NCBI GenBank assembly: GCA_002269645.1
Contig: NIVC01001762.1
Span: 1-64,000, forward strand
DNA from: Macrostomum lignano
Taxonomy: Eukaryota
Direction: 5' to 3'
Length of the DNA: 64,000 nt
This document shows positions 2,707 through 51,061 of this stretch, one piece after another; the stretch's first letter is position 1; each line of letters opens with the position of its first letter. Below the pieces are notes generated by a model. The model did not search any database. It had not been told where the DNA came from and saw only the letters and a program-made list of their open reading frames with translations. A program made the position numbers and the translations under genes.

Positions 2707-2734
2707 AAACTACATGATGAGGGCTGTGCCAAAG

Positions 2735-3805: not shown

Positions 3806-4125
3806 GGGTTTATCAAGATACGTGCCTATCCACCTGCTCTAGCTGTACAGTATTTTTTCTTAAGTAGAAATTTATATTCCAATTAAATGATAGAGAAACG
3901 AGTGGCAAATTAATTTATTACTGTCAGATTGAAACCTCTAACATCGTAACAGTCGGTGTATTTTCCGAAAGCAAACAATCCATAAAAACGAACACTAAAA
4001 CACTCGCACACCAGCATTTCAGAAATAGCAGAGATAAAAAACAGCATAGTGCCGTCAGGCTGGATAATCATGTGCAAGCTAAAAGTAATTTAGTTAGTCC
4101 AATGCATTCAAAGCATTCTAGCTGT

Positions 4126-17033: not shown

Positions 17034-20000
17034 ATGGCCCAGCACGAGGTTCGCGAGCTGCTAGTAGTGCTGAATCTCAGTCACAATGGCCGCAAGGCGC
17101 GTCTCTACAGGCGCCTCCTAGCCTGTCTGGACGCTCAATCAGTCCCGATCTCCGCCCTGTTGAAGTGCCGGTCTACTAAGCTTAGGGAAGCCGCCAGACA
17201 GGTCGACTTGCCTCGAATGTTATTTAGTGGCGTCCAGCTGCCCTTCGCGGAAGTACTGGGCAGTTTGATCCCACTGACTCTGTTGATACAGAGCGAGCCT
17301 CTGTCTGCGATGCAGTGCCAGCTGCTGGAGTTCACTGTCAAGCCGGAACACGCCCCCCTGATCAAGGCTGGCGCTCGCCTTATTATGCGTTTCTACAAGC
17401 TGCTGGTGAGTCTGCCTCCTGCTCTCTGCACTCTCACTGTCTGACCCCTCTGCTCCCTCACTGTCTGACCCCTCTGCTCCCTCACTGTCTGACCCCTCTG
17501 CTCCCTCACTGTCTGACCCCTCTGCTCCCTCACTGTCTGACCCCCTCTCTGCACCCTCACTGTCTGACTCTCTCTCTGCACCCTTACTGTCTGACTCTCT
17601 CTCTGCACCCTCACTGTCTGACCCCCTCTGCACCCTCACTGTCTGACCCCTCTGCTCCCTCACTGTCTGACCCCCTCTCTGCACCCTCACTGTCTGACTC
17701 TCTCTCTGCACCCTCACTGTCTGACCCCCTCTGCACCCTCACTGTCTGACTCTCTCTCTGCACTCTCACTGTCTGACCCCTCTGCTCCCTCACTGTCTGA
17801 CCCCTCTGCTCCCTCACTGTCTGACCCCCTCTCTGCACCCTCACTGTCTGACTCTCTCTCTCTGCACCCTTACTGTCTGACTCTCTCTCTGCACCCTCAC
17901 TGTCTGACCCCCTCTGCACCCTTACTGTCTGACTCTCTCTCTGCACTCTCACTGTCTGACCCCTCTGCTCCCTCACTGTCTGACCCCTCTGCTCCCTCAC
18001 TGTCTGACCCCCTCTCTGCACCCTCACTGTCTGACTCTCTCTCTGCACCCTCACTGTCTGACCCCCTCTGCACCCTCACTGTCTGACTCTCTCTCTGCAC
18101 TCTCACTGTCTGACCCCTCTGCTCCCTCACTGTCTGACCCCTCTGCTCCCTCACTGTCTGACCCCCTCTCTGCACTTTCACTGTCTGACTCTCTCTCTGC
18201 ACCCTCACTGTCTGACCCCTCTGCACCCCCACTGTCTGACTCTCTCTCTGCACCCTCACTGTCTGACCCCCTCTGCACCCTCACTGTCTGACTCTCTCTC
18301 TCTGCACCCTCACTGTCTGACTCTCTCTCTGCACCCTCACTGTCGGACCGCCTCTCTGCACTCTCACTGTCTGACCCCTCTGCTCCCTCACTGTCTGACC
18401 CCTCTGCTCCCTCACTGTCTGACCCCTCTGCTCTCTCACTGTCTGACCCCTCTGCACCCTCACTGTCTGACCCCCTCTCTGCACCCTCACTGTCGGACCG
18501 CCTCTCTGCACTCTCACTGTCTGACCCCTCTGCTCCCTCACTGTCTGACCCCTCTGCACCCTCACTGTCTGACTCTCTCTCTGCACCCTCACTGTCTGAC
18601 CCCTCTGCTCCCTCACTGTCTGACCCCTCTGCTCCCTCACTGTCTGACCCCTCTGCTCCCTCACTGTCTGACTCTCTCTCTGCACTCTCACTGTCTGACT
18701 CTCTCTCTGCACCCTTACTGTCTGACTCTCTCTCTGCACCCTCACTGTCTGACCCCCTCTCTGCACCCTCACTGTCGGACCGCCTCTCTGCACTCTCACT
18801 GTCTGACCCCTCTGCTCCCTCACTGTCTGACCCCCTCTCTGCACCCTCACTGTCTGACTCTCTCTCTGCACCCTCACTGTCTGACCCCTCTGCTCCCTCA
18901 CTGTCTGACCCCTCTCTGCACTCTCACTGTCTGACCCCTCTGCTCCCTCACTGTCTGACCCCCTCTCTGCACCCTCACTGTCTGACCCCCTCTCTGCACC
19001 CTCACTGTCTGACTCTCTCTCTGCACCCTCACTGTCTGACCCCCTCTGCACCCTCACTGTCTGACTCTCTCTCTGCACCCTCACTGTCTGAATCTCTCTC
19101 TGCACCCTCACTGTCTGACCCCCTCTGCACCCTCACTGTCTGAATCTCTCTCTGCACCCTCACTGTCTGACCGCCTCTGCTCCCTCACTGTCTGACCCCC
19201 TCTGCTCCCTTACTGTCTGACCCCCTCTCTGCACCCTCACTGTCTGAACCCTCTGCTCCCTTACTGTCTGACCCCTCTGCTCCCTCACTGTCTGACTCCT
19301 CTGCTCCCTCACTGTCTGACCCCTCTGCACCCTCACTGTCTGACCCCCTCTCTGCACTCTCACTGTCTGACTCCTGTTTGCCAAGCAAGCCGAGATCGCA
19401 TACTGAGCACTCGCCTCAATCCCCTCTGTGTTCTCAGGGCCAAGGCGAAAGCCGAGTAGACGAGTTTCCCGAGCAGCTGAGCATCCGGCTGAATTCCAAC
19501 GTCCTGCAGAGCGAGCAGCTCGCCCAGATGCGCGGCCGCGTCGCCGGAGTCCCCGTGGACATTACGGATCACTCCAAGACTGATTTATGCGAGAGTAATA
19601 AAGTCACAGTCACCTGGTGCCAGCCAGACGGCCAGCGCTTCTGCTTGGAGACGCTGCTCATCCGCTATAGAAGCGTCGAAGCTGAGCTGGCGAGAATCCC
19701 GCGCGGCTCCTGCAAATCCACTCTGTTTGGCTCTTTATCTAGCGGCGACTGCCAGGTGGCCAAGCAGCCAGCCTCCCTGACCTGCCCCATCAGTATGACC
19801 CGCATTGTCCGACCTGTCCGCGGCGTTCTGTGCCGGCATCTGCAGTGCTTCGATGCGGCCTCCTACCTGAGCGTGAACCGGTCCCGTCTCGACTGGCGCT
19901 GCCCCTGCTGCAAGTTGCCGACCCAGCCGCGCCAGCTGTACGTGGACACCGAGTTCCAAGAGATCCTCGCCGCCGCCAGTCACGACGACGGCTACGTTGA

Positions 20001-21300
20001 ATTCGACGGGCCCAGCTCATGGAAGCTGATCAAGTCGGAATCGTCTCGGGGTGGCGCAGGTGCCGCCGCCAGTCAGCAGACAGTCGCTAGCGGCGGCGGA
20101 GTCAAGCTGGCGGCATCGAGCAACCCGGCAGCCAGCAACGCGGTGTGGACGCTGGCCGATTCGGAGTCCGAGTCCTCCGACATGGAAATCGCCCACAGCG
20201 ACGACGAGCTCAATGACGCGCCGTCGCGTCCTCCGCTGCCTGTGATTATTTCTCCGCCTGTTTCCATGGCAACAGCTAGTGCAGTCCCAGCCGCACCTGC
20301 CGCCGCCGCCGCCGCCGCCGCTTCCGCTGCGCCAATCGTCATCGACCTGACAGAAGATGACGACACTGTACCAAAGGAGGAGACGCCGGATAATGTCTCC
20401 ACAGCTGCGGCCAATTCTGTCTCAGCTGCCGCGCCAGAAGCGGCGGGCGCATTCAAGAATGGCACGGCAACATTCGTCACGCGCCAAGAGCAATGGCCAA
20501 CAGCCAATGCCGGCCAGTCCAAGTGCCAAGCCTACCAGCCGCAGCCGTCAGCCAAGAAGCAGGAGTGCCAGTTGCAGCAGGCGGCCTCTGACTCATTGCC
20601 AGACGATCAGAATGAGAGGCAAGCGTACCTGCACTTGCTCCCGCCAACCAGAGAGCAGACCGCGGCCTTCCAGCTGCCGACCCCGGCCGAGGTTATCCGG
20701 CGTAGCGGCCGGGTGGCGTCAGCTGATCTGACTGGCGCAGAGGAGGAGCCGAAAATGCTGATCCTGCGCCAGCCGCCCAGCAACAGCCTGCGGCAGTTCC
20801 AGCAGCAGCGCCAAAAGCAGCCGTCTCAGTTCGGATTCGGGCCAGCCGCTCAAGCCAAGCCGGGTAGCAACAGCAACACCTCGCCTTCGCCGATGCCGTG
20901 GGACTCCCGGCCGAATCGCTCGCGCTCGCCATCGCGTCATTCCTCCGGGTCGCGTCACAGCCGCCAGCGTTCGCCTCAGCGAGACCTCCCGCTGACCAAT
21001 CCCCGTGGTTCTCGACCAGATCATCGGCGACCTCAGCAGCAGCAGAAAGGCCGCGACCTGCCGTTCTACAGCAGATCGTTTCTGGTGAATCAACAGCGTC
21101 GGCAGCAGCCAGCAGCCGCTCTCAGGACCGTCAGTGGCAGCGCTGATCATCCTCGGCCGCAGGCGTCGTCTTTAAAACGGCACCTGTCGCCGCCACAGAT
21201 TCCAAATATGCAGCAGCCAGGCAGCGCTGGAGTCCATCAACCGCAGTGGAATGGAAATGACGACTCCAGTGATGATGAGAGCCTGGAGTACTGGCAGTGA
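17034..21300 (+). CDS. PIAS: PIAS/Siz-family SUMO E3 ligase (SAP, PINIT, SP-RING, SIM); exons 17034-17405 and 19438-21300, about 744 aa
   Basis: SAP-like EVRELLVVLNLSHNGRKARLYRRLL; PINIT pieces LPFAEVL, DEFPEQL, PVDIT; SP-RING LTCPISMTRIVRPVRGVLCRHLQCFD...WRCPCC; SIM IVIDLTEDDD. Phase-0 intron CTG|gtgagt...ttctcag|GGC. Confidence 0.88.
17420..19372. repeat. Minisatellite (24-29 bp variants) filling the PIAS intron
   Basis: Unit CTCACTGTCTGACCCCTCTGCTCC with length variants. Confidence 0.95.
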
Positions 21301-23274: not shown

Positions 23275-26200
23275 TGCTCTCTGCCACCCAGTCCTCAGGC
23301 TGAGCCACCCTCTGCCACCCAGTCTTCAGGCTGAGCCACCCTCTGCCACCCAGTCCTCAGGCTGAGCCACCCTCTGCCACCCAGTCCTCAGGCTGAGCCA
23401 CCATCTGCCACCCAGTCCTCAGGCTGAGCCACCCTCTGCCACCCAGTCCTCAGGCTGAGCCACCCTCTGCCACCCAGTCCTCAGGCTGAGCCACCCTCTG
23501 CCACCCAGTCCTCAGGCTGAGCCACCCTCTGCCACCCAGTCCTCAGGCTGAGCCACCCTCTGCCACCCAGTCCTCAGGCTGAGCCACCCTCTGCCACCCA
23601 GTCCTCAGGCTAAGCCACCATCTGCCACCCAGTCCTCAGGCTGAGCCACCCTCTGCCACCCAGTCTTCAGGCTGAGCCACCCTCTGCCACCCAGTCCTCA
23701 GGCTGAGCCACCCTCTGCCACCCAGTCCTCAGGCTGAGCCACCCTCTGCCACCCAGTCTTCAGGCTGAGCCACCCTCTGCCACCCAGTCCTCAGGCTAAG
23801 CCACCATCTGCCACCCAGTCCTCAGGCTGAGCCACCCAGTCCTCAGGATGAGCCACCCAGTCCTCAGGCTGAGCCACCATCTGCCACCCAGTCCTCAGGC
23901 TGAGCCACCCTCTGCCACCCAGTCCTCAGGCTGAGCCACCCTCTGCCACCCAGTCCTCAGGCTGTGCCACCCTCTGCCACCCAGTCTTCAGGCTGAGCCA
24001 CCCTCTGCCACCCAGTCCTCAGGCTGAGCCACCCTCTGCCACCCAGTCCTCAGGCTGAGCCACCATCTGCCACCCAGTCCTCAGGCTGAGCCACCCTCTG
24101 CCACCCAGTCCTCAGGCTGAGCCACCCTCTGCCACCCAGTCCTCAGGCTGAGCCACCCTCTGCCACCCAGTCTTCAGGCTGAGCCACCCTCTGCCACCCA
24201 GTCCTCAGGCTGAGCCACCCTCTGCCACCCAGTCCTCAGGCTGAGCCACCCTCTGCCACCCAGTCCTCAGGCTGAGCCACCATCTGCCACCCAGTCCTCA
24301 GGCTGAGCCACCCTCTGCCACCCAGTCCTCAGGCTGAGCCACCATCTGCCTTCCAGTCCTCAGGCTGAGCCACCCTCTGCCACCCAGTCTTCAGGCTGAG
24401 CCACCCTCTGCCACCCAGTCCTCAGGCTGAGCCACCCTCTGCCACCCAGTCCTCAGGCTGAGCCACCCTCTGCCACCCAGTCCTCAGGCTGAGCCACCCT
24501 CTGCCACCCAGTCCTCAGGCTGAGCCACCCTCTGCCACCCAGTCCTCAGGCTAAGCCACCATCTGCCACCCAGTCCTCAGGCTGAGCCACCCAGTCCTCA
24601 GGATGAGCCACCGAGTCCTCAGGCTGAGCCACCATCTGCCACCCAGTCTTCAGGCTGAGCCACCCTCTGCCACCCAGTCCTCAGGCTGAGCCACCCTCTG
24701 CCACCCAGTCCTCAGGCTGAGCCACCATCTGCCACCCAGTCCTCAGGCTGAGCCACCCTCTGCCACCCAGTCCTCAGGCTGAGCCACCCTCTGCCACCCA
24801 GTCCTCAGGCTGAGCCACCCTCTGCCACCCAGTCCTCAGGCTGAGCCACCCTCTGCCACCCAGTCCTCAGGCTGAGCCACCCTCTGCCACCCAGTCCTCA
24901 GGCTGAGCCACCCTCTGCCACCCAGTCCTCAGGCTGAGCCACCCTCTGCCACCCAGTCCTCAGGCTGAGCCACCCTCTGCCACCCAGTCCTCAGGCTAAG
25001 CCACCATCTGCCACCCAGTCCTCAGGCTGAGCCACCCTCTGCCACCCAGTCCTCAGGCTGAGCCACCCTCTGCCACCCAGTCCTCAGGCTGAGCCACCCT
25101 CTGCCACCCAGTCCTCAGGCTGAGCCACCCTCTGCCACCCAGTCCTCAGGCTAAGCCACCATCTGCCACCCAGTCCTCAGGCTGAGCCACCCAGTCCTCA
25201 GGATGAGCCACCCAGTCCTCAGGCTGAGCCACCATCTGCCACCCAGTCCTCAGGCTGAGCCATCCTCTGCCACCCAGTCCTCAGGCTGAGCCACCCTCTG
25301 CCACCCAGTCCTCAGGCTGAGCCACCCTCTGCCACCCAGTCCTCAGGCTGTGCCACCCTCTGCCACCCAGTCTTCAGGCTGAGCCACCCTCTGCCACCCA
25401 GTCCTCAGGCTGAGCCACCCTCTGCCACCCAGTCCTCAGGCTGAGCCACCATCTGCCACCCAGTCCTCAGGCTGAGCCACCCAGTCCTCAGGATGAGCCA
25501 CCCAGTCCTCAGGCTGAGCCACCATCTGCCACCCAGTCCTCAGGCTAAGCCACCATCTGCCACCCAGTCCTCAGGCTGAGCCACCCAGTCCTCAGGATGA
25601 GCCACCCAGTCCTCAGGCTGAGCCACCATCTGCCACCCAGTCCTCAGGCTGAGCCACCCTCTGCCACCCAGTCCTCAGGCTGAGCCACCCTCTGCCACCC
25701 AGTCCTCAGGCTGTGCCACCCTCTGCCACCCAGTCTTCAGGCTGAGCCACCCTCTGCCACCCAGTCTTCAGGCTGAGCCACCCTCTGCCACCCAGTCCTC
25801 AGGCTGAGCCACCCTCTGCCACCCAGTCCTCAGGCTGAGCCACCATCTGCCACCCAGTCCTCAGGCTGAGCCACCCTCTGCCACCCAGTCCTCAGGCTGA
25901 GCCACCCTCTGCCACCCAGTCCTCAGGCTAAGCCACCCTCTGCCACCCAGTCTTCAGGCTGAGCCACCCTCTGCCACCCAGTCCTCAGGCTGAGCCACCC
26001 TCTGCCACCCAGTCCTCAGGCTGAGCCACCCTCTGCCACCCAGTCCTCAGGCTGAGCCACCCTCTGCCACCCAGTCCTCAGGCTGAGCCACCCTCTGCCA
26101 CCCAGTCCTCAGGCTAAGCCACCATCTGCCACCCAGTCCTCAGGCTGAGCCACCCAGTCCTCAGGATGAGCCACCCAGTCCTCAGGCTGAGCCACCATCT

Positions 26201-27020
26201 GCCACCCAGTCTTCAGGCTGAGCCACCCTCTGCCACCCAGTCCTCAGGCTGAGCCACCCTCTGCCACCCAGTCCTCAGGCTGAGCCACCATCTGCCACCC
26301 AGTCTTCAGGCTGAGCCACCCTCTGCCACCCAGTCCTCAGGCTGAGCCACCCTCTGCCACCCAGTCCTCAGGCTGAGCCACCCTCTGCCACCCAGTCCTC
26401 AGGCTGAGCCACCCTCTGCCACCCAGTCCTCAGGCTGAGCCACCCTCTGCCACCCAGTTTTCAGGCTAAGCCACCATCTGCCACCCAGTCCTCAGGCTGA
26501 GCCACCCAGTCCTCAGGATGAGCCACCCAGTCCTCAGGCTGAGCCACCATCTGCCACCCAGTCCTCAGGCTAAGCCACCCTCTGCCACCCAGTCCTCAGG
26601 CTGAGCCACCCTCTGCCACCCAGTCCTCAGGCTGTGCCACCCTCTGCCACCCAGTCTTCAGGCTGAGCCACCCTCTGTCACCCAGTCCTCAGGCTGAGCC
26701 ACCCTCTGCCACCCAGTCCTCAGGCTGAGCCACCCTCTGCCACCCAGTCCTCAGGCTGAGCCACCATCTGCCACCCAGTCCTCAGGCTGAGCCACCCTCT
26801 GCCACCCAGTCCTCAGGCTGAGCCACCCTCTGCCACCCAGTCCTCAGGCTGAGCCACCCTCTGCCATCCAGTCTTCAGGCTGAGCCACCATCTGCCACCC
26901 AGTCCTCAGGCTGTGCCACCATCTGCCTTCCAGTCCTCAGGCTGAGCCACCATCTGCCTTCCAGTCCTCAGGCTGTGCCACCCTCTGCCACCCAGTCCTC
27001 AGGCTGAGCCACCCTCTGCC
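23275..27020. repeat. 31-bp minisatellite, about 120 copies
   Basis: Unit CTGCCACCCAGTCCTCAGGCTGAGCCACCCT with recurring shortened variants. Confidence 0.97.
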
Positions 27021-27361
27021 CATTCCTCCGCCCATGCCATAAACAGCGGACTAACCAATCGCTGTTTTATTGGTCACAAACAATTTAACCGCTCGAAATT
27101 TCTCTGCCCCCCGGCTCTCCTAAATCAACCCGCGCTGGCGATAAAAACCGATGTTCTAGCTTTCAGTTCAGAATCATTTTTGCTGCATTCGGTAATTAAA
27201 TTTCTGCAACAAATTGTTCCATTGCATGCCAAGACCTGCGCCGCAGCAATGGCGTAGCGAATCGCGGCAGCCCCAATATCTTGCCAGCATTAAATGCATG
27301 CAGTTGATTCTGGTTTGGCAAGCAGCCAAGCAAATTCTAAGGCGCCTTAATCGAGGCCCTC

Positions 27362-30300
27362 ATGTTGCTGCAATTCAAATTCAAAGCTGGTCTGCCGTTA
27401 GGCCTTGTGCTGAACGACTGCGGCTGCTGTACTGCTGAGGAAGATCAAGGAGGCTGCGGTAATGGCGATCATGCCGTTGGGGTTTCCGTGAAAGAGGTGA
27501 GACCAATGGTGAATTTAAGATGTGTTAGCTCTTCCCTCCTGTTTCCCATCGCTATTTTTGTCTGGATAAAAGCAGAATGTTCCCCAATCCCTGTCCCCAG
27601 CTCCCATTCCCTGTCACCAGCTCCAAGACACCAGCTTCCATTCCCTGTCCCCATCTCCAAGACAACAGCTCCCATTCCCTGTCCCCATCTCCAAGACACC
27701 AGCTTCCATTCCCTGTCACCAGCTCCAAGACACCAGCTCCCATTCCCTGTCCCCATATCCAAGACACCAGCTCCCATTCCCTGTCCCCATCTCCAAGACA
27801 CCAGCTTCCATTCCCTGTCCCCAGCTCCAAGACACCAGCTCCCATTCCCTGTCCCCAGCTCCAAGACAACAGCTCCCATTCCCTGTCCCCAGCTCCAAGA
27901 CACCAGCTCCCATTCCCTGTCCCCAGCTCCAATACACCAGCTCCCATTCCCTGTCCCCAGCTCCAAGACACCAGCTTCCATTCCCTGTCCCCAGCTCCAA
28001 GACACCAGCTCCCATTCCCTGTCCCCAGCTCCAAGACACCAGCAGCTCCGATGCACACCAATGAGGGCCAACCCCGAAGGCGCTGTGAGTGTACATGCCT
28101 GACGATTAGAAAGTCAGGGCTAAGTGTACACCCTGTGTGAGCGCTCAGGAGTCAGCGGAATAAGCGCTGATTGTAGGACGATGTCTCCGTAGACGTGTTG
28201 GAGTGCCCACAGCCCTGCAATTATTATTATTATTATTATTAATACCCACAGTTGTACTGCACTACTTCAAGTAGTTCCGCGCCAATCCCTCAGATAATCT
28301 GCGGCGGCCTGGTCTTCCTCGACGGCCAAATGAGGGTTGGCGACGTAGTGTTGGAAGTGAACGGCGCGGCTCCGGCAAACGGAAAAGAGGCAACTCGCCT
28401 CATGGAGGAGGCCAGCGGCACTGTCTGCCTCACTGTCAGACGGTTAGTTGCCTAGCTGCTTGCATTGGAGCTGGGGAAGGAAAGGAAAGAATAAGGGTAG
28501 TAATAATAGTGAAGGTAGAGTACGAGTAGGGAGTGTAGAGTAAGAATGAGGGTGGAGTGGAGAGAGGGTAGGAGTAGGAGCAGGGTAGAGTAGAGTGAGG
28601 GTAGAGTAGAGAGTAAGGGTAGAGTAGAGAGTGAGGGTAGAGTAGAGAGTGAGGGTAGAGTAGAGAGTGAGGGTAGAGTAGAGAGTGAGGGTAGAGTAGA
28701 GAGTGAGGGTAGAGTAGAGAGTGAGGGTAGAGTAGAGAGTGAGGGTTGAGTAGAGAGTGAGGGTTGAGTAGAGATTTAGGGTAGAGTAGAGAGTGAGGTT
28801 AGAGTAGAGAGTGAGGGTAGAGTAGAGAGTGAGGGTTGAGTAGAGAGTAAGGGTTGAGTAGAGACTGAGGGTAGAGTAGAGAGTGAGGGTTGAGTAGAGA
28901 GTGAGGGTTGAGTAGAGACTGAGGGTAGAGAGTGAGGGTAGAGTGAGGGTTGAGTAGAGAGTGAGGGTAGAGTGAGGGTAGAGACAGGGTAGAGAGTGAG
29001 GGTAGAGAGTGAGGGTAGACTGAGGGTAGAGAGTGAGGGTAGAGAGTGAGGGTAGAATGAGGGTAGAGAGTGAGGGTAGACTGAGGGTAGAGAGTGAGGG
29101 TAGACTGAGGGTAGAGAGTGAGGGTAGACTGAGGGTAGAGAGTGAGGGTAGACTGAGGGAAGAGTAAAGAGTGAAGGTAGAGTAGAGAGTGAGGGTTGAG
29201 TAGAGAGTGAGGGTTGAGTAGAGAGTGAGGGTTGAGTAGAGAGTGAGGGTTGAGTAGAGAGTGAGGGTAGAGTGAGGGTTGAGTAGAGAGTGAGGGTTGA
29301 GTAGAGAGTGAGGGTTGAGTAGAGAGTGAGGGTTGAGTAGAGAGTGAGGGTTGAGTAGAGACTGAGGGTGGAGAGTGAGGGTAGAGTGAGGGTAGAGAGA
29401 GAGTAGAGTGAGGGTAGAGAGTGAGGGTAGAGTGAGGGTAGAGAGTGAGGGTAGAGTGAGGGAAGAGAGTGAGGGTAGAGTGAGGGTAGAGAGTGAGGGT
29501 AGAGTGAGGGAAGAGTAAAGAGTGAGGGTAGAGTAGAGGGTAGAATTGTGTGAGGTAAGATTTGAGAAATTGTTGGAGTAGAGTGAGGGGCAGAGTTAAG
29601 GCATAGGGAGTGTGATGGTGATAGCATGAGTATACATCAAGCAGGGGTAAGGTGAAAAGTACAAATGCACAGGGGAAAGTGTCCTGCTGCATTCGGAATT
29701 CAAGACAGGCCTGTCTGTTTCAATCGCGAAATGCAAAATGAGAAACCCCGATTGACAGCTGATCATCATTTCACTGTTTTACTGCCGTGTCACTGACATT
29801 CCATTGCCTGTATTGGCCGAGTCAATACAGTCTGTGTGGTGTTTGAATAAAAAGTTCTCTCCGGCTCCCTGAGTGCAGATTTATTTTATCTTGACAAGCT
29901 AGAAAGTGACTAAAGAAAGGACTAACAGCCTTCTCGTGTGCACTAAGGGCACATCCTGCTGCAAATTTGCACTCAAACATGAGCGCTTGGCGTTATTCTG
30001 CTTTCTTAGAAATGGTCGGGTTTTTAATTTATAAAAGGATTTTTTAAAAATCGTATTTCAATGATTTCCAGTCGGGAACCGGCTCAGCCGGTGTCCACTG
30101 CCGAGCGGCACAGCCAATCCGCTGAAGAGGTCTCGCTGGCTCCCGCATCTCCCACCGACTGCAGCGCCGTCTTGAACTCGTCGAAGATGTCGCACAGCCG
30201 GAGCTTCGATTTGCTGCTCACAACGCCGGAACGGGGACCCGAGTCGCTCTGGTTTGAGGCGTAAGTTTCCATGCTGTGCGATTCTCTGCTTTGAAATCCC

Positions 30301-33300
30301 CCCTCAACTGCCAGTAGGAATCGCCCCTCAACTGCCAGTAGAAATCGCCCCTCAACTGCCAGTAGAAATCGCCCCTCAACTGCCAGTAGGAATCCCCCTC
30401 AACTGCCAGTAGGAATCGCCCCTCAACTGCCAGTAGAAATCGCCCCTCAACTGCCAGTAGGAATCGCCCCTCAACTGCCAGTAGGAATCGCCCCTCAACT
30501 GCCAGTAGAAATCGCCCCTCAACTGCCAGTAGAAATCGCCCCTCAACTGCCAGTAGGAATCGCTCCTCAACTACCAGTAGAAATCGCCCCTCAACTGCCA
30601 GTAAAAATCGCCCCTCAACTGCCAGTAGAAATCGCCCCTCAACTGCCAGTAGAAATCCCCCCTCAACTGCCAGTAGAAATCGCCCCTCAACTGCCAGTAG
30701 AAATCGCCCCTCAACTACCAGTAGGAATCGCTCCTCAACTACCAGTAGAAATCGCCCCTCAACTGCCAGTAGGAATCGCCCCTCAACTGCCAGTAGGAAT
30801 CGCCCCTCAACTGCCAGTAGGAATCGCCCCTCAACTGCCAGTAGGAATCGCCCCTCAACTGCCAGTAGAAATCGCCCCTCAACTGCCAGTAGAAATCGCC
30901 CCTCAACTGCCAGTAGAAATCGCCCCTCAACTGCCAGTAAAAATCGCCCCTCAACTGCCAGTAGGAATCGCCCCTCAACTGCCAGTAGGAATCGCCCCTC
31001 AACTGCCAGTAGAAATCGCCCCTCAACTGCCAGTAGGAATCGCCCCTCAACTGCCAGTAAAAATCGCCCCTCAACTGCCAGTAGAAATCGCCCCTCAACT
31101 GCCAGTAGAAATCGCCCCTCAACTGCCAGTAGAAATCGCCCCTTAACTGCCAGTAGAAATCGCCCCTCAACTGCCAGTAAAAATCGCCCCTCAACTGCCA
31201 GTAGAAATCGCCCCTCAACTGCCAGTAAAAATCGCCCCTCAACTGCCAGTAGAAATCGCCCCTCAACTGCCAGTAGAAATCGCCCCTCAACTGCCAGTAG
31301 GAATCGCCCCTCAACTGCCAGTAGGAATCGCTCCTCAACTACCAGTAGAAATCGCCCCTCAACTGCCAGTAAAAATCGCCCCTCAACTGCCAGTAGAAAT
31401 CGCCCCTCAACTGCCAGTAGAAATCCCCCCTCAACTGCCAGTAGAAATCGCCCCTCAACTGCCAGTAGAAATCGCCCCTCAACTACCAGTAGGAATCGCT
31501 CCTCAACTACCAGTAGAAATCGCCCCTCAACTGCCAGTAGGAATCGCCCCTCAACTGCCAGTAGGAATCGCCCCTCAACTGCCAGTAGGAATCGCCCCTC
31601 AACTGCCAGTAGGAATCGCCCCTCAACTGCCAGTAGAAATCGCCCCTCAACTGCCAGTAGAAATCGCCCCTCAACTGCCAGTAGAAATCGCCCCTCAACT
31701 GCCAGTAGGAATCGCCCCTCAACTGCCAGTAGAAATCGCCCCTCAACTGCCAGTAGAAATCGCCCCTCAACTACCAGTAGGAATCGCTCCTCAACTACCA
31801 GTAGAAATCGCCCCTCAACTGCCAGTAGGAATCGCCCCTCAACTGCCAGTAGGAATCGCCCCTCAACTGCCAGTAGGAATCGCCCCTCAACTGCCAGTAG
31901 GAATCGCCCCTCAACTGCCAGTAGGAATCGCCCCTCAACTGCCAGTAGGAATCGCCCCTCAACTGCCAGTAGAAATCGCCCCTCAACTGCCAGTAGGAAT
32001 CGCCCCTCAACTGCCAGTAGGAATCGCCCCTCAACTGCCAGTAGGAATCGCCCCTCAACTGCCAGTAGAAATCGCCCCTCAACTGCCAGTAGGAATCGCC
32101 CCTCAACTGCCAGTAGGAATCGCCCCTCAACTGCCAGTAGAAATCGCCCCTCAACTGCCAGTAGAAATCGCCCCTCAACTGCCAGTAGAAATCGCTCCTC
32201 AACTGCCAGTAGAAATCGCCCACTAAAGCTGTCCCTTTAACAGAGCCCAGACAAGCTGCCGTGATGTTAAATGAAATGTTCAATTGGAGGTCATGCAGTT
32301 AGACATTTTAGGGATAATAAAGGAGCATTACCATGCCAGGGGTCGGTCGGTGCAGTTTTTTCTATTCTCCCCTTTTCTATTATTAGTGTATGTATTGTAA
32401 TACAGTAAGCTACTTAGCGCGCGCAAATCCCAATAACACACCGGATGAATTCTGCCTGCCGCAGACAGGCGTGTGTTTCTCTCTCTGTGTGTGTATGTGT
32501 GTGTGAAAATGTGTGCGTGTGTGCATGTGCGTGTGCGTGTGCCCGTAACTGTGTGGGTTCGTGCGCGCGTTTCCACATTGTTCTTTAAATTGTTTAGCAA
32601 TCCGAGAGCTGAGATTCTAACAGTCGAATTGGCTTGGGTTTTTTATAGTAAATAAAAGGAAAGAAATCTCATGACAGTTAATCGCGCTGGGTGAGCTGGT
32701 GTTGTTGGCTTGCCTGACTGGGTGCATTAAATATGTATGCGCCAGAGAGAGAGAGAGAGAGAGAGTAGACAGTTTGGCGAGAGATAGGCGAGGACAGAGC
32801 AAAGTCCGCGCCTCACATGCAGCCGCACAGCCGGGGAGGGAGGGGGGGGTGGCGACAGCCAGTAGGAAGGCTTGATGGAACCAGCCCCCTCTGGCGGTAT
32901 TAAAACTGGGCAATCAAAAAAAAGAATTCTGATCCAGTGTCCGTTCCGCACAGTTATTTTCCCTGATAGCTGAATAGTTTTTTATTGAATATTTGTTAAA
33001 CTTCTCCCATTCCCATTCGCAGCGGCGACTGCACTGACTTGGCCAGCCAATGCCAGCGGGGTGGCCAACAGCTGCAGCACGACAGAGCCGTCTCCTTGCC
33101 AGCTGAGGCAACCGCCGTTGCGATGCCTGCCGCTTCTCTCATGCCGCCTAGTTCAACAAGTTCCAGGCCGACCTCCTGGCACGAGGAGCCGCCGCCGCAG
33201 CAGCCGCAGCGCCAGAGGCAGTCGCCGCCGCCGCCTCCGCTGCCTGCCCGATCCTCACAGCCGCTGCCGCAGCAGCTGGCTCGTAAATTCAGCGTCCAGC

Positions 33301-36300
33301 TGCCTTTGCGGTCTCAGCAGCAGCCGCAGAAGCAGCAGCCGCCGCCTCTGCCGCCGCACCAGCGGAATCCGCAGCATCAGCGGCACGGCTCCCTGATGGT
33401 GCCGACTATGCAGCAGATTCAGCAAACCCATCGGGCTCTCCGGGTTGCCCAGGACGATCAGCAGGGCGGCTTTCTGGCTTTTCAGGCGCTCCGCTCTGGC
33501 GGCCCCAGCCGGCGCGGCCCCCTCATCGCGCGCGCTTCCGACCCGGACGTGGCTGCCACCATCCAGGCCGCGGTGGCCGCCGCCGCCGGCAGCTCCCCGC
33601 CGGAGGTCGCCAGACGCGGCTCAGCCGACGATTTGCTCGACTCGCCGTCTGACGACAACAACGATACTGGGGAGAACGGCGGCGGAGTCGTTGAAATCCT
33701 CGATGGTGTCCACGGCGGCGGCGGGCCCGCCGAGGACGAAGAGGACGACGACGCCACCATCGTGGAAGACGAGTCAACGGCCGCGCCACTGCAGCAGCTG
33801 TCGCGGTCAGCGATGGTCAACAGGTGTGGCGCGTCTCCCTCAGTGTTTTCTCTTTTATCAGGGCGACCCCGTGTGAGCTGGTAATGTGGCACCTCAATGG
33901 GGTCACATGTTTCTTAACAAGCTTTGGTCTGATCCCCAGGCCCTTATCAATCCCATCCCCCTGATCCCCAGGCCCTTATCAATCCCATCCCCTGATCCCC
34001 AGGCCCTTACCAATCCCATCCCCTGATCCCCAGGCCCTTATCAATCCCATCCCCTGATCCCCAGGCCCTTATCAATCCCATCCCCTGATCCCCAGGCCCT
34101 TACCAATCCCATCCCCTGATCCTCAGGCCCTTATCAATCCCATCCCCTGATCCTCAGGCCCTTACCAATCCCATCCCCTGATCCCCAGGCCCTTATCAAT
34201 CCCATCCCCTGATCCCCAGGCCCTTATCAATCCCATCCCCTGATCCCCAGGCCCTCATCAATCCCATCCCCTGGTTCCGAGGCCCTTATCAATCCCATCC
34301 CCTGATCCCCAGGCCCTTATCAATCCCATCCCCTGATCCTCAGGCCCTTACCAATCCCATCCCCTGATCCCCAGGCCCTTATCAATCCCATCCCCTGATC
34401 CCCAGGCCCTTACCAATCCCATCCTCTGATCCCCAGGCCCTTATCAATCACATCCCCTGATCCCCAGGCCCTTATCAATCCCATCCCCTGATCCCCAGGC
34501 CCTTATCAATCCCATCCCCTGATCCCCAGGCCCTTATCAATCCCATCCCCTGATCCCCAGGCCCTTACCAATCCCATCCCCTGATCCCCAGGCCCTTATC
34601 AATCCCATCCCCTGATCCCCAGGCCCTTATCAATCCCATCCCCTGATCCCCAGGCCCTTACCAATCCCATCCCCTGATCCCCAGGCCCTTATCAATCCCA
34701 TCCCCTGATCCTCAGGCCCTTACCAATCCCATCCCCTGATCCCCAGGCCCTTATCAATCCCATCCCCTGATCCCCAGGCCCTTATCAATCCCATCCCCTG
34801 ATCCCCAGGCCCTTATCAATCCCATTCCCTGATCCCCAGGCCCTTATCAATCCCATCCCCTGATCCCCAGGCCCTTATCAATCCCATCCCCTGATCCTCA
34901 GGCCCTTACCAATCCCATCCCCTGATCCCCAGGCCCTTATCAATCCCATCCCCTGATCCCCAGGCCCTTACCAATCCCATCCTCTGATCCCCAGGCCCTT
35001 ATCAATCACATCCCCTGATCCCCAGGCCCTTATCAATCCCATCCCCTGATCCCCAGGCCCTTACCAATCCCATCCCCTGATCCCCAGGCCCTTATCAATC
35101 CCATCCCCTGATCCCCAGGCCCTTACCAATCCCATCCCCTGATCCCCAGGCCCTTATCAATCCCATCCCCCTGATCCCCAGGCCCTTATCAATCCCATCC
35201 TCTGATCCCCAGGCCCTTATCAATCCCATCCCCTGATCCCCAGGCCCTTACCAATCCCATTCCCTGATCCCCAGGCCCTTATCAATCACATCCCCTAATC
35301 CCCAGGCCCTTATCAATCCCATCCCCTGATCCTCAGGCCCTTATCAATCCCATCCCCTGGTTCCGAGGCCCTTATCAATCCCATCCCCTGATTCCCAGGC
35401 CCTTATCAATCCCATCCCCTGATCCTCAGGCCCTCATCAATCCCATCCCCTGGTTCCGAGGCCCTTATCAATCCCATCCCCTGATTCCCAGGCCCTTATC
35501 AATCCCATCCCCTGATTCCCAGGCCCTTATCAATCCCATCTCATGATCCACCTGGGTTCTTACTTAGAGACCTCAAGAATTTTTATTATCTAATATAAAC
35601 TCTCTGCCCTGTCTGTCCTGTTGAGTTTAAGAAGTGTCAACCGTATATACGCGAGTCTGTTTATGCGCAGACCTCACGCCTGCATTCTAGTCCCACTCTA
35701 GAGCTCCGCAACAAGATAAGGCTGAGTACAGACTTGACCCCCTGCAGCTCCAGCCAGCCTTACGCGGATAGTTCAAAATAAACACATGACGCATTCTTTT
35801 TCAAACTGCTCAACCCAGCTCAATAAGTAGTGACGCGTTTGCGTAATTGACATTATTATTTCGCGATCGTGTCAGTCTCTCTGTGTGTGTTTGTTAAAAT
35901 GCGTGCGCTCAATGTGGACTTTGGAGTTGGGTGGTTGGTGTTAAACGGGGTGCTTTCACAAGGTCGAAATTTCACAACGTCGAAAAGTAAATTATTTCAC
36001 AAGGTCGAAACTTCACAAGGTCGAAATTTCACAACATCGAAAACTTTAGCAAGAGGCTTCATAAGGTCGAAATTTCATAAGGTCGAAATTTCATAACATC
36101 GAAAACTCAAATAGCAGCCACTTTCACAAGGTCGAAACTTCACAAGGTCGAAATTTCACAACATCGAAAAATCTAGCAAGAGATTTCATAAGGTCGAAAT
36201 TTCACAAGGTCGAAATTTCATAACATCGAAAACTCAAGTGCAGCCACTTTCACAAGGTCGAAACTTCATAAGCTCGAAATTTCACAAAGTCGAAAATTTT

Positions 36301-39300
36301 ATATATCAAGAACCATACAGTAGTTTTCTACGTATGGTCGAAATAGTCGAAATTTCGACCTTGTGAAAGAAGGTGCTTTCGACGTTGTGAAATTTCGAGT
36401 TTGTGAAACCCCCCCGTGTTAAACCTTTGTTACGTAATAACTTGCACTGCAAATATTTGCTTGCTTCAGCTGCTGCTCTGGGAAGCGAAGACGCAGGCTT
36501 AAATCTATTCTAAGAAATCTTTAAAAATGAATTTAAGAAGCCCCTGAGCTGCTCCATTCGGTTCTCAGCAGAAACAATAATAAAGGCTGCATTCCTTTCT
36601 TGTTATAATTATTAACACTGAGCGCAATTGTCTCTCAATCCTGTCCCCTAGGGGGGGGGGCACACGGCACTTTCCCCCTTCCTGTATGCTCTGACCACTC
36701 TCTCCCTCTCTCTCTCTCTCTCCACTCACTTATTCTCTTCTTGACCACCGCAGACTTCAACTCAGAAAACTTTATTAGAGCTGGCTAGCCATATGCATAG
36801 TTGTATCTATTTTTAGCTATAGAGCTGTGTACATCCATTGTACACACGCGCGTGGCCGGAGCTTGACTGGCGCAGCGGGTGAGACTGGAGGTTTAGAGGG
36901 CCATATATCCCAGGCTGAGCGCGAGAGAGAGAGTCCAGCCCGCTCAGCGGGATCTCACTCAAACAAGGTGAGAGAAGTCGACAGCAGAGAGAAGGGGGGA
37001 GAGTTGAGTTCAGTTAGTTTGAGTGTTCTTCAGTCTTTATGATTGACGGCTACAATTTCAGGTTGGGCCCTTGGCTAGCTGATTCCCCACCTGGAGTCTC
37101 GCTCTCGCTCCCCCCCAAGCTCACTCAATCAACTGCTAAATCCCCGATGCCATGGAATTCCAGTTAGAGGGCGTCCAAGTGTGATACAGACACCTTATTG
37201 TCTCTTCCATCTGGCTTGTCTTCTCCTGCTTCTGGGTGGAATTGGAACTGGGGATCGATTTTTGTATGCTGCTTTTTTGTTGTTCTCACCTGTAGTGCAG
37301 TAGGGCTGTCTGTCCTGCTTTTACATTTCTTGTGGCTTGATAATGCTGGCAATTCAGCCGTTTCGGGGTGTATAGCCTCAGTGGCTGCTGTATGGCTGTT
37401 GGAACTTACTATATTTGTGAATGTCCTTGCGTGTCTCCCACTGCCTACCCCAGTGTCTCCCACTGCCTACCCTAGTGTCTCACATTGCCTACTCTAGTGT
37501 CTCCCACTGCCTATCCCAGTGTCTCACATTGCCTACTCTAGTGTCTCCCACTGCATATCCCAGTGTCTCACATTGCCTACTCTAGTGTCTCCCACTGCCT
37601 ACCCCTGTGTCTCACATTGCCTACTCTAGTGTCTCCCACTGCCTACCCTAGTGTCTCACATTGCCTACTCTAGTGTCTCCCACTGCCTACCCTAGTGTCT
37701 CACATTGCCTACTCTAGTGTCTCCCACTGCCTACCCTAGTGTCTCACATTGCCTACTCTAGTGTCTCCCACTGCCTACCCCAGTGTCTCACATTGCCTAC
37801 TCTAGTGTCTCCCACTGCCTACCCTAGTGTCTCACATTGCCTACTCTAGTGTCTCCCACTGCCTACCCTAGTGTCTCACATTGCCTACTCTAGTGTCTCC
37901 CACTGCCTATCCCAGTGTCTCACATTGCCTACTCTAGTGTCTCCCACTGCCTACCCTAGTGTCTCACATTGCCTACTCTAGTGTCTCCCACTGCCTACCC
38001 TAGTGTCTCACATTGCCTACTCTAGTGTCTCCCACTGCCTACCCCTGTGTCTCACATTGCCTACTCTAGTGTCTCCCACTGCCTACCCTAGTGTCTCACA
38101 TTGCCTACTCTAGTGTCTCCCACTGCCTACCCTAGTGTCTCACATTGCCTACTCTAGTGTCTCCCACTGCCTACCCTAGTGTCTCACATTGCCTACTCTA
38201 GTGTCTCCCACTGCCTACCCCAGTGTCTCACATTGCCTACTCTAGTGTCTCCCACTGCCTACCCTAGTGTCTCACATTGCCTACTCTAGTGTCTCCCACT
38301 GCCTACCCCAGTGTCTCACATTGCCTACTCTAGTGTCTCCCACTGCCTACCCTAGTGTCTCCCACTGCCTACCCCAGTGTCTCCCACTGCCTACCCCAGT
38401 ATCTCCCACTGCCTACCCCAGTGTCTCCTATTACTTACCCCTGTGTCCTCCCTTTCCGCCTCCTACAATCCGCTGCTTCCAATCCGCATTCTCAGGTCGC
38501 CGAATTCCTTGGATGACGCGCCGTCGGCAGCATCCATCACCGCCGCTGCTGCCCCTCCGGCTCGGCCGCCTCGCCGCAGGTCATTCGGCCCGCTGTCGGC
38601 CTCCTACCCGTCGCCGCAGCCGCCAGCTCAGACGGCGCCATCGTCCCGTAGCCGGCCGGCCGCGCAGCCTCTCGCCTCGCTGTCTGCCGCGGCCAACGGC
38701 CAGGCGGAGCCGGGCACCACCATCCCGCGGGACAAGTACGCCCAGCAGATCCGGCGCGCCCAGATGTCTCTGCCGAGATCTGTCAGCGGAGCCAAACCTC
38801 CTTCACCGTCGGCTGCGGCTTCGGCCTCAGCCAGTGCTGGAGCCGCCGGGACTCCGCCTCCGGCTGTGCCGCCTCGACGTGGCGCTCGCGACTCTGCGAG
38901 GTGAGTCACTGGCATTTCAGCTTCTTCTCCATCTCCACTTTCTGCTTCTCCGTTCAAGTCGTAGTGTAGAAAATATGTTTCAATACATATCGGGGATGAA
39001 CTGGCTACTCTTGCACTCATTTACGAGGTGTTGAATAAATCTACTGATCTATTTCAAAGTTCATTGGCTACTATAATTCACACTAATTAGACAGCGGCCT
39101 CTCTAATCTCTCTCCCGCCTGGCCTCATCTTGTCTTCCACCACCTCGGCAGGCTGCTTTTCTCTCCATCCACTCCCGGCTGTCTGTACTAATAAAAGCAA
39201 TTTTCAATTTCCTATGAGCGCAGCAGCCCAGCCAACCGTGGGATTAAACATTTTTAGTCTTTTATTGCACCTAATGGCTCACAGGTGGACTGAATGCGGC

Positions 39301-41066
39301 TCCGTTTTCTATTGATTATTCCCAGTCTCTTCGCGTCTGCCCGCCTATGGTAACAATTTCATTGATTTCCTCCTAAAACTGACTATTTATATTTGCATGC
39401 AGATAGGCAGAACTCTTGTGTATCCGGGATGCAGGTCCCGACAACTGCAGTTCCTAGGGGCCACATGGAATTCCTTTCTGCCTGGCATCCTTGCGGAGAG
39501 GCGGAGGCACCAATGCTCGCTTCTTTTCAGCGGGTACACAATTGACTGTTGCGATTTAGGTTAAAGTTTGAGTTTAGGTTGTGGTTTAGGTTGGGGTTAG
39601 GGCTTGGTTCTTTATTCGAGTCAGGGGGGCTGTGTGCACCCTGGCGCACTTCCGCCGACTCCCCTGAGTAGGCACACACGCAGGAGTGTACATCGGCCCT
39701 AACTTTTTTATCATTGGGCATGTACACTTCACTGTGCCTCGGGTGTTGGCCCCCAAGGCCATTAATTGCACGAACAGAGCCAAGCCGAGATTCCTTTTTA
39801 GCCGCGAATTAATGTGACTGCGAATCGAGCCTGGGCCACTGGCTCGTGAGAGCGCCGCGCTGGACCACAGGGCTACAGCCCCCCCCCCCAGGGTTTGGGT
39901 TTACGTTAAGTTTGGGTTTAGGTTAAGGTTTAGGTTTAGGTTAAGGTTTGGGTTTCAGGTTAAGGTTTGGGTTTCAGGTTAAGGTTAGGGTTTCAAGTTA
40001 AGGTTTGGGTTTAGGTTAAGGTTTGGGTTTCAGGTTAAGGTTTGGGTTTAGGTTAAGGTTTGGGTTTAGGTTAAGTTTGGGTTTAGGTTAAGTTTGGGTT
40101 TAGGTTAAGGTTTGGGTTTAGGTTAAGCTTGGGTTTAGGTTAAGGTTTGGGTTTCAGGTTAAGGTTTGGGTTTCAGGTTAAGGTTTGGGTTTAGGTTAAG
40201 ATTTGGGTTTCAGGTTAAGGTTTGGGTTTAGGTTAAGATTTGGGTTTCAGGTTAAGGTTTGGGTTTCAGTTTAAGGTTTGGGTTTCAGGTTAAGATTTGG
40301 GTTTCAGGTTAAGGTTTGGGTTTAGGTTAAGGTTTGGGTTTAGGTTAAGATTTGGGTTTCAGGTTAAGGTTTGGGTTTCAGTTTAAGGTTTGGGTTTCAG
40401 GTTAGGGCTAGGAGGGTTATGACAGTCGGCAGAGTCGTCGTAGACCTTTTTCACCGTGTTCAAAGTCCTGAAGGTTTGCTAAACGCTGCTATACCTTGAA
40501 CGTGTGCAATGGTATCATGGTAGGTGTCAGAATGGGCAGAAAAATTGCCTCACTGAGTCGCCGCACACTGCAGGACTATTATCTATCGCCGACATCGTGC
40601 AGCTAAAACTAATGCTGATGATTGACAGCTATGTAGCCAAGAGCGCTGGGTGGAGCAAGGGTTGGATGGGGAAGGCCGTGACGCCGCGGGTGTTTGAGGG
40701 TTAATTAGGCCGACACCTCTCCCGGGCCTTCGGTCCAGCCTCACTGATTAGCCTGGCTAAATCTCTGCTCAGCTCTATTTTTGACAAGCTCAGACATAGC
40801 AGGCCCTAAAGAGCTGCTAGAGAGGCTGCCCGAGAGTCCCATGGTGTTGCCTTTTTGGGGAGCATTTTTATTCCTATTTGGCTATTTATAGTAGCACGTG
40901 AAGCATGTTTGGCGTCACGTCGGAAATGCGCTGCAGTGAGATAATGCTAATTAGTTATTCGTTATGAGTAGCTAAAAGGTAACAGTTCTCGGCGCTTCTA
41001 ACATTCAGGCCAATAGCATGGCATTTACTCGCTATCTGCGTGTCTCTCTGTCTATCTGCGTGTCTC

Positions 41067-41113
<47 letters not shown>

Positions 41114-41161
41114 GACTGTCTGTCAGTCTGTCTGTCTGTCTGTCTGACTGTCTGTCAGTCA

Positions 41162-41201
<40 letters not shown>

Positions 41202-41217
41202 GACTGTCTGTCTGTCA

Positions 41218-41253
<36 letters not shown>

Positions 41254-41256
41254 GAC

Positions 41257-41317
<61 letters not shown>

Positions 41318-41329
41318 GACTGTCTGTCA

Positions 41330-41373
<44 letters not shown>

Positions 41374-41374
41374 T

Positions 41375-41425
<51 letters not shown>

Positions 41426-41514
41426 GACTGACTGTCTGTCTGACTGTCTGTCTGACTGTCTGTCTCTGTGTCTGTCTGTCTGTATGTCTGTCTGTCTGTC
41501 TGTCTGTCTGTCTT

Positions 41515-41560
<46 letters not shown>

Positions 41561-41561
41561 A

Positions 41562-41597
<36 letters not shown>

Positions 41598-41668
41598 GAC
41601 TGTCTGTCTGACTGTCTGTCTCTGTGTCTGTCTGTCTGTATGTCTGTCTGTCTGTCTCTGTCTGTCTA

Positions 41669-41703
<35 letters not shown>

Positions 41704-41706
41704 GAC

Positions 41707-41759
<53 letters not shown>

Positions 41760-41775
41760 TTCTGTCTGTCTGTCC

Positions 41776-41843
<68 letters not shown>

Positions 41844-41846
41844 TAG

Positions 41847-41879
<33 letters not shown>

Positions 41880-41880
41880 T

Positions 41881-41922
<42 letters not shown>

Positions 41923-41923
41923 A

Positions 41924-41971
<48 letters not shown>

Positions 41972-41972
41972 T

Positions 41973-42014
<42 letters not shown>

Positions 42015-51002: not shown

Positions 51003-51061
<59 letters not shown>

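Follow-up and report, generated by a model that had tools for sequence, protein, structure and literature searches.

The closest described parallels to the element treated here are LINE-tailed SINEs such as UnaSINE1 with its partner UnaL2, for which recognition is reportedly stringent, a result ascribed to Kajikawa and Okada in 2002. BivaV-SINE2 and BivaCORE-SINE1 have a 3' region in common with their partner LINE, CR1-14_CGi, with a conserved stem-loop, and conserved stem-loops with compensatory mutations have been described for SINE/LINE 3' tails (PMC4824008). The 3' ends of RTE LINEs are AT-rich trimer, tetramer or pentamer repeats, (ATT)n being a tail type of the RTE clade (PMC1291365). 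In flatworms RTE elements are abundant and RTE-derived SINEs have been reported, according to a passage in the same article (Malik and Eickbush, 1998, as cited in PMC1291365). The superfamilies named for a highly conserved central domain (HCD), among them CORE, V, Deu, Ceph, Nin-DC and Meta, likewise combine a head, a conserved body and a tail, and the Macrostomum genome, an invertebrate's, also carries a CORE-like SINE. A flatworm precedent for catalytic RNA in such elements is given by the schistosome Sm-alpha SINE-like elements, which carry hammerhead ribozymes.

The region analyzed, referred to below as the window, extends over positions 1-64000 at the start of contig NIVC01001762.1 from Macrostomum lignano. 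A structured RNA predicted there belongs to an ordinary tRNA-Val-derived SINE family, of which it forms the 3' body. The family resembles the LINE-tailed SINEs (UnaSINE1/UnaL2, BivaV-SINE2, BivaCORE-SINE1) in its tRNA-like Pol III head, in a structured region beside a simple-repeat tail, in apparent compensatory changes between relatives, and in the retention of the module in a 5'-truncated copy. On the other hand, the Macrostomum module is multi-helical and 130-150 nt long across copies, whereas the described stem-loops measure about 50-70 nt; its three copies have differing tails, and no partner LINE was found in about 210 kb of sequence. The likeness to RTE LINEs is one of tail type only, i.e., the AT-rich trimer (ATT)7 of copy A, whereas copies B and C have no ATT repeat. 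Like Sm-alpha, it is a Pol III retroposon of a flatworm and has a striking RNA fold, but it has neither a hammerhead core nor another Rfam ribozyme signature. As an overall explanation, we consider it rather probable that this 3' body of a tRNA-Val-derived SINE folds into a recognition handle for a partner LINE.

Anatomy and copies of the SINE

The full-length element, represented by copies B and C, is about 280-290 nt long. A and B boxes lie in its Pol III head; a middle stem domain, a multi-helix domain of about 130 nt and a short tail then follow toward the 3' end. It is short and non-coding, and the 64 kb contain three independent, dispersed insertions, which occupy both strands and lie either in introns or in the flanks of genes. 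These insertions, the tRNA-Val-like head (both boxes plus the CUCACGA remnant of the anticodon loop) and a 5'-truncated copy with a simple-repeat tail bear out the original prediction that the RNA is carried by a SINE. The element had been taken to be present twice; copy C (16244-16531, minus strand), which scores 91 bits with a covariance model, raises the number to three. With the filters off, the covariance model found no copy beyond A, B and C. A 17-bit match at 32420-32533 was rejected as (TG)n-like low complexity. The same window holds a CORE-like SINE at 50703-51006, which matches the family profile in the tRNA head only.

In copy B, on the minus strand, the tRNA-Val(CAC)-like Pol III head occupies 39814..39882, with the A box at 39865-39875 (TAGCCCTGTGG), the B box at 39821-39831 (GGCTCGATTCG) and an anticodon-loop remnant, CTCACGA, at 39844-39850. 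This head aligns with a tRNA-Val(CAC)-like one that ARAGORN detects (E 0.0016); the heads of the family are themselves not called as tRNA by ARAGORN or Rfam. The middle domain (39755..39813, minus strand), delimited by alignment and direct reading, is closed by a perfect 8-bp stem of CAUUAAUU (39807-39814) with AAUUAAUG (39760-39767), which is identical in copy C. The folded 3' domain follows at 39624..39754 on the same strand (153 bits with the covariance model). The 3' end, TGACTCGAATAAAGAACCAAG (39603..39623, minus strand), has no ATT repeat; it is A-rich (end stretch AATAAAGAACCAAG), contains AATAAA and passes into an AACCT-like satellite.

Copy C (E 4.7e-69), missed in the original prediction, is full-length, AT-rich and decayed. 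Its minus-strand features are a perfect A box at 16514-16524 (TAGCCTAGTGG), a B box at 16468-16478 (GGCTTGATTTC) and a homologue of the folded domain at 16266-16394; the end sequence is GGGCAATAAT. The 3' ends thus differ among copies, (ATT)7 being restricted to A, with an A-rich AATAAA-containing stretch in B and AATAAT in C. As for target-site duplications, GACTATTTAG and GTCTATTGCTAG may be an imperfect one flanking copy C; this weak candidate is the only one, the site of B being unreadable inside the satellite.

Copy A is a 5'-truncated SINE copy or else a LINE 3' end. Its folded domain (28064..28216, plus strand; 102 bits with the covariance model, E 3.5e-28) has no tRNA-like head and includes an A-specific extra hairpin of about 32 nt. 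Homology with the domain of B holds, with 75.7% identity over 107 nt in blastn (E 1e-10) and 29 differences in 120 hand-aligned columns (24%), and the predicted CAAC, CACA, GAGUC and GAA motifs are all present. Also as predicted, B is preceded by the tRNA-like head and A terminates in GCA(ATT)7. This tail, an AT-rich trimer repeat at 28217..28243 (plus strand), reads GCA, then (ATT)7, then AAT, so that 3 nt alone separate the domain from the simple repeat. Upstream, 28049..28063 (ATGC..CCAATG, plus strand) is still B/C-like by alignment and direct reading, and tentatively marks where the 5' truncation probably occurred, beside a 34-bp minisatellite.

Proposed recognition by a partner LINE

Three functions had been suggested for the RNA: a reverse-transcriptase recognition domain, a processing signal or a new ribozyme. 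The first is the most likely and agrees best with the anatomy, since the domain adjoins the tail and the 5'-truncated copy still has it. In the mechanism we propose, the sense strand would be transcribed by Pol III, and the long P3/P4 hairpin together with the tail-adjoining P5 hairpin would act as a handle for the reverse transcriptase of the partner LINE. Target-primed reverse transcription would then begin at the 3' end, which would explain why the 5'-truncated copy A retains exactly domain and tail. To judge from the (ATT)n tail in copy A, an RTE-type partner is probable. The differences between A and B would reflect distinct source genes, each bound to keep the hairpins. No LINE sequence was found in the approximately 210 kb that could be read, i.e., the 64-kb window and about 150 kb of homeologous loci.

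A variant of this explanation, not exclusive of it, is that copy A is itself what heavy 5' truncation has left of a partner LINE, namely its 3' end, and that the SINE (copies B and C) borrowed the module from this LINE. LINE copies are often truncated to a few hundred bases, and copy A consists of the domain and the (ATT)n tail only; the 24% difference from B, the extra 32-nt hairpin and a tail unlike those of B and C also agree with such an origin. However, some 15-20 nt upstream of the domain of A resemble the SINE body of B and C, and what lies further upstream is just minisatellite, with no LINE coding remnant. We regard this origin of copy A as possible but not favored.

It is unlikely that the domain instead represents a SINE body of the HCD type (CORE, V, Deu, Nin-DC or Meta like), kept for a reason other than LINE recognition, for instance RNA stability or processing or export of the Pol III transcript, and that the family may belong to a described superfamily. 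A tRNA head and a middle region do precede the domain, which is also the order in HCD SINEs; many invertebrates have SINEs of this type, and a second SINE with a CORE-like body is found in the same window. In addition, copies B and C have extra non-homologous sequence past the domain, so a true LINE-derived tail may lie downstream. In copy A, however, the domain abuts the simple-repeat tail, and the similarity to the CORE-like SINE is confined to the head. A string like that of the CORE domain (CTTGGGCAAGTCACTTAAC...) occurs in none of copies A, B and C.

Fold, covariation and decay

Copies A and B had been predicted to fold into the same multi-stem shape. This applies to P3/P4 and P5, the only hairpins that are robust in both copies (pair probabilities 0.85-1.0), and not to P1 and P2, which fall outside the predicted ensemble of A. 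In copy B, all helices of the original prediction occur in the minimum free energy (MFE) structure or the ensemble (P1 0.95, P2 0.72, P3 1.0, P5 0.85). The corresponding probabilities in A are 0.05-0.07 for P1 and 0.00 for P2; the best fold of A with P1 and P2 lies 4.1 kcal/mol above the MFE structure, which instead pairs GGC.GCUGUG with CACAGCC. The 32-nt insertion specific to A forms a hairpin of its own and leaves the neighboring helices undisturbed. The proposed GAGUC/GACUC pseudoknot has a partner in the B lineage and in no other, and was rejected.

Both copies fold better than dinucleotide-shuffled sequences (z -3.39 for A and -3.33 for B, with 0 of 200 shuffles as good), and the antisense strands equal or surpass them (z -3.73 and -4.11). 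The consensus fold of A and B gave a z of -4.2 against column shuffles, which none of 500 equaled, and -2.25 for the antisense. Copy C no longer folds better than its shuffles (z 0.0).

Under the pairing of the original prediction, the five double changes between A and B are all there. They comprise one in the closing stem (AGGGC/GCCCU in A vs GGGGC/GCCCC in B), two pairs in GCGCU/AGCGC vs GCACA/UGUGC, one in UGAC/GUCA vs (C)AAU/GUU(A), and one in AGCG/CGCU vs GGCG/CGCC; three of the five sit in P1 and P2. The P4 exchange of G-C to A-U is also found in copy C, and in the L005 copy of B a U-A pair is restored. With the predicted structure, 81.8% of cells are paired, vs 20-53% for slid partners, and two-sided change occurs at 6 pairs, a number reached by 1-2 of 500 shuffles. 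When the structure derived from B was applied to A, 36 of 41 pairs were kept and 4 were compensatory (P ~0.03-0.04). The structure derived from A gave one compensatory pair in B (P 0.17; 0.17-0.72 for that direction overall). Covariation is marginal with two to three informative sequences, its P lying between 0.03 and 0.26 according to the test. Shuffled alignments on which the structure was chosen freely yielded a mean of 2.6 compensatory pairs and at least 4 in 26% of cases, so the observed number is not unusual. The A/B differences are not clearly rarer in stems (19 of 82 stem positions and 10 of 38 loop positions, by the fold of B).

The fate of inserted copies can be followed in homeologous M. 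lignano loci, which were reached via host genes (PIAS-like and Shroom-like) and cover about 150 kb. This DNA contains the same three orthologous insertions and no others. Because all three are common to the two homeologous contigs, no empty site can be read; the identity between homeologous copies equals that of the flanks. The homeologues of B show stem substitutions without compensation. Once inserted, the copies are dead; they decay neutrally, as fast as their flanks do.

These results bear on the reading that no structure is under selection, in which palindromic runs (GTGTACA/TGTACAC and GC-rich tracts) fold on either strand and compensatory pairs arise from the free choice of pairing at 75% identity. 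The yield of the freely chosen structures, the poor transfer of the A-derived fold to B, the loss of P1 and P2 from the ensemble of A, the equal folding of the antisense and the uncompensated decay all speak for such a reading. Against it stand the consensus energy, which is better for the sense than for the antisense strand, the drop in pairing with slid partners, the hairpins retained at high probability in two lineages that differ by 24%, and an insertion in A that folds by itself beside intact neighbors. We consider it improbable. Selection on the fold, probably through recognition by a partner LINE, is plausible, but two to three decaying copies do not suffice to establish it. The original prediction of a selected RNA structure gains from a consensus fold that surpasses column shuffles, and is weakened by marginal covariation, by P1 and P2 not being predicted in A, and by neutral decay of the copies. 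In a wider sense, five 'compensatory' pairs between two repeat copies count as evidence of selection only once the structure has an independent basis and a large number of copies has been compared.

RNA families, further searches and annotation

A scan of the whole window against Rfam 15, with covariance models of self-cleaving ribozymes such as hammerhead, HDV-like, twister, pistol and hatchet, gave 0 matches at gathering scores. Relaxing the threshold to E <= 10 for copies A, B and C returned noise alone (E 0.4-8.6; lncRNA, miRNA and snoRNA models). It is highly doubtful that a flatworm SINE has spread the 130-nt domain as a functional RNA module not described before, be it a new HCD found beyond Macrostomum or an RNA with a role in processing or catalysis whose junction (CAAC, CACA, GAGUC and GAA loop) is conserved. 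Least probable is that the SINE carries a new self-cleaving ribozyme or a signal for RNA processing: a multi-helix junction with conserved single-stranded CAAC, CACA, GAGUC and a GAA loop would suit this, but the conserved motifs are few and based on two sequences, no Rfam match appears even at E <= 10, and a hammerhead core cannot form. A hammerhead reading of CUGACGA...GAAA...GUC in copy A was rejected, as it leaves no room for helix II; the string is absent from B and C.

Further copies were not found in viral and prokaryotic genome scans, and a metagenome scan with the hairpin pattern matched only GTGTACAC-type satellite. With the open frame of the SINE as a protein query, the outcome was nothing or a spurious repeat protein resembling a plant transposase. 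Literature string searches with motifs of the element gave primer coincidences only, and no paper on Macrostomum SINEs was found.

The chief value of the analysis lies in annotation, since it defines a SINE family by head, middle stem, 3' domain and tails. M. lignano serves as a model of regeneration, and most of its repeats are unclassified. The folded domain is a specific candidate for the handle in a partnership of SINE and LINE. Apart from the SINEs, the window contains at its start an integrase plus PC4-like element.

Anatomy and copies of the element

Copies A (28064-28216, +) and B (39624-39754, -) were found where the original prediction had placed them, with 75.7% identity over 107 nt (blastn within the window, E 1e-10) and differences in 29 of the 120 columns of a MAFFT alignment that was hand-corrected by one base. 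Only two copies had been claimed; a third, the AT-rich, decayed but full-length copy C, lies at 16244-16531 (-) and is supported by blastn (E 2e-19), nhmmer (E 4.7e-69) and a covariance model (91 bits). A tRNA-like head, as described earlier for B, opens both B and C. The head of B carries an A box (TAGCCCTGTGG), a B box (GGCTCGATTCG) and the anticodon-loop remnant CTCACGA, and in C the A box is perfect (TAGCCTAGTGG). This head aligns (E 0.0016) to the head, called as tRNA-Val(CAC) by ARAGORN, of another SINE present in the homeologous loci. Next comes a middle region, which a perfect 8-bp stem with the same sequence in B and C, CAUUAAUU/AAUUAAUG, closes; the folded domain is then followed by a short tail. 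Copy A has neither head nor middle region; it begins some 15 nt ahead of the domain and terminates in GCA(ATT)7, the ATT tail expected behind A, which the tails of B and C do not resemble.

Copy A itself could be a truncated LINE 3' end. In anatomy A, B and C are copies of a tRNA-derived SINE, one of them truncated at its 5' end, and the element has the tRNA-like head, the size and the dispersed copies of a SINE. Membership of the CORE-SINEs was rejected, as the CORE-like SINE at 50703-51006 has the head alone in common with the element. A hammerhead was dismissed, the string in A being unable to form helix II and missing from B and C. At gathering scores Rfam gave no match anywhere in the 64-kb window, and at E <= 10 the three copies yielded nothing but noise, indicating that the element belongs to no ribozyme or RNA gene family known so far. 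A literature search found no description of Macrostomum SINEs.

Folding and covariation of the domain

Both A and B are more stable than their dinucleotide shuffles (z -3.39 and -3.33), and their antisense strands fold at least as well (z -3.73 and -4.11). Full-length B reached z -2.3, and whole copy C was no more stable than shuffles (z 0.0). The original prediction assigned A and B one shape, with outer helices P1 and P2, a long hairpin P3/P4 and a hairpin P5. All of these helices are present in the minimum free energy structure and ensemble of B (P1 0.95, P2 0.72, P3 1.0, P5 0.85), while in A only the P3/P4 and P5 hairpins are predicted (0.9-1.0). Pair probabilities in A were 0.05-0.07 for P1 and 0.00 for P2, and imposing P1/P2 costs 4.1 kcal/mol; A favours an alternative GGC.GCUGUG/CACAGCC pairing that B is unable to form. 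The shape is shared only in part. The CAAC, CACA, GAGUC and GAA motifs are all present, and the suggested GAGUC/GACUC pseudoknot finds its GACUC partner in the B lineage and in no other.

The five two-sided changes reported between A and B truly exist under the proposed pairing, three of them in P1 and P2, together with one wobble change and one C·A mismatch in B. Since the homeologous copy of B, like C, has U-A at this pair, the mismatch probably arose after insertion. The RNAalifold consensus energy of A and B gave z -4.2 against 500 column shuffles, compared with just -2.25 for the antisense. With the proposed structure imposed on five sequences, 81.8% of cells were paired, against 20-53% with partners slid by 1-3 columns, and the covariation was matched by only 1-2 of 500 shuffles, figures that the tool itself warns are inflated by the relatedness of the sequences and by the derivation of the structure from them. 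When the fold of B alone was applied to A, 36 of 41 pairs were kept (4 compensatory, P ~0.03-0.04); that of A alone, applied to B, was non-significant (28 of 34 pairs, one compensatory, P 0.17 and 0.72). With free choice of structure, shuffled alignments averaged 2.6 compensatory pairs and 26% of them reached four. Differences between A and B showed no clear depletion in stems relative to loops. The tests disagree, as a set of just two informative sequences permits. Conservation is credible for the two hairpins and uncertain for the outer junction, and covariation in the domain is unproven.

Insertion history and a candidate partner

The locus also occurs on two more contigs of assembly GCA_002269645.1, NIVC01000365.1 and NIVC01000592.1, compared here as the segments L003, L005, L006 and L007, and all three insertions lie at matching places in both, indicating that they are older than the duplication or haplotype split of this polyploid-like genome. 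The three versions, including NIVC01001762.1, are 88-100% identical. The copies are as similar across contigs as their flanks are: identities of copy and flank are 99-100% and 99-100% for A, 100% and 97-100% for C, and 94-95% and 90-99% for B. Substitutions that set the B homeologues apart are mostly at paired positions and uncompensated (P1 G to A and a deletion, P3 G to A, P2 U to A, P1 3' strand G to A). The genomic copies are dead and drifting neutrally; any selection acted on source genes.

Transcription of the sense strand by Pol III would start from the internal promoter, and the hairpins adjoining the 3' end may provide a handle for the reverse transcriptase of a partner LINE. Reverse transcription beginning at the tail would leave truncated copies such as A with domain and tail. 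Bivalve SINEs and CR1 have 3' tails of SINEs and LINEs with conserved stem-loops and compensatory changes (PMC4824008). AT-rich trimer repeats are the hallmark with which elements of the RTE clade end at 3', and flatworms have RTE-derived SINEs on record (PMC1291365); on these two grounds, an RTE LINE is the leading candidate as partner of the A subfamily.

Host locus and neighbouring elements

Copy A ends, in sense orientation, a few tens of bases 5' of the PDZ-domain exon of a Shroom-like gene (window 28217-28304 for this junction). The gene encodes a PDZ/ASD2 protein, for which a concatenated-exon query matches an M. lignano protein at 100%; the locus retrieved for that protein spans 17362-55175 on NIVC01001762.1. 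Position 10679 of this locus, where copy A sits, equals window 28040, which makes the window bases 1-64000 of the contig. Because copy A, this exon and the flanks are all 99-100% identical across the three contigs, the comparison reveals no extra constraint on A. A 640-aa ORF at 19378-21300 has 99% identity to an M. lignano PIAS-like protein. Copy C lies antisense within the range annotated for the PIAS-like gene, at a distance of about 300-600 bp from the annotated gene start and upstream of the SAP-domain ORF at 17034, and may be 5'-UTR or first-intron material of that gene. Copy B is embedded in AACCT/AAACC-type satellite (GGTTTGGGTTTAGGTTAA), with 512 bp on one side (39892-40404) and about 45 bp on the other (39560-39602); the repeats downstream of B are either target DNA or part of the element's own tail.

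The stretch 2152-4902 (-) at the contig start resembles part of an element of Maverick/Polinton-like or LTR type. It holds an integrase ORF with rve core and chromodomain (2735-3805, -), a PC4-like protein ORF (4126-4902, -) and further adjoining ORFs of unassigned identity, and no alignment was obtained to L003, the homeologous contig for that end.

The second SINE family (50703-51006, -; also L005:32022-32117 and L006:23840-24140 in the homeologous loci) consists of a tRNA-Val(CAC)-like head, a CORE-like body (CCTTGAGCAAGACACTTAAC...CAGCTGTTAAATAGGTGCC) and the 3' end ...GTCAGTTATTATCAATAG. ARAGORN recognises the head as a tRNA in the homeologous loci; in the window its anticodon loop is mutated. 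The insertion site is a (TAG)n microsatellite within a presenilin intron, about 50 nt 5' of the exon starting at 50651. Minisatellite arrays (periods 16-44 bp, up to 80 copies) are unusually dense at 25000-42000 and 57500-62600; these arrays and a long (TGTC)n run (41041-42000) generate many long spurious ORFs.
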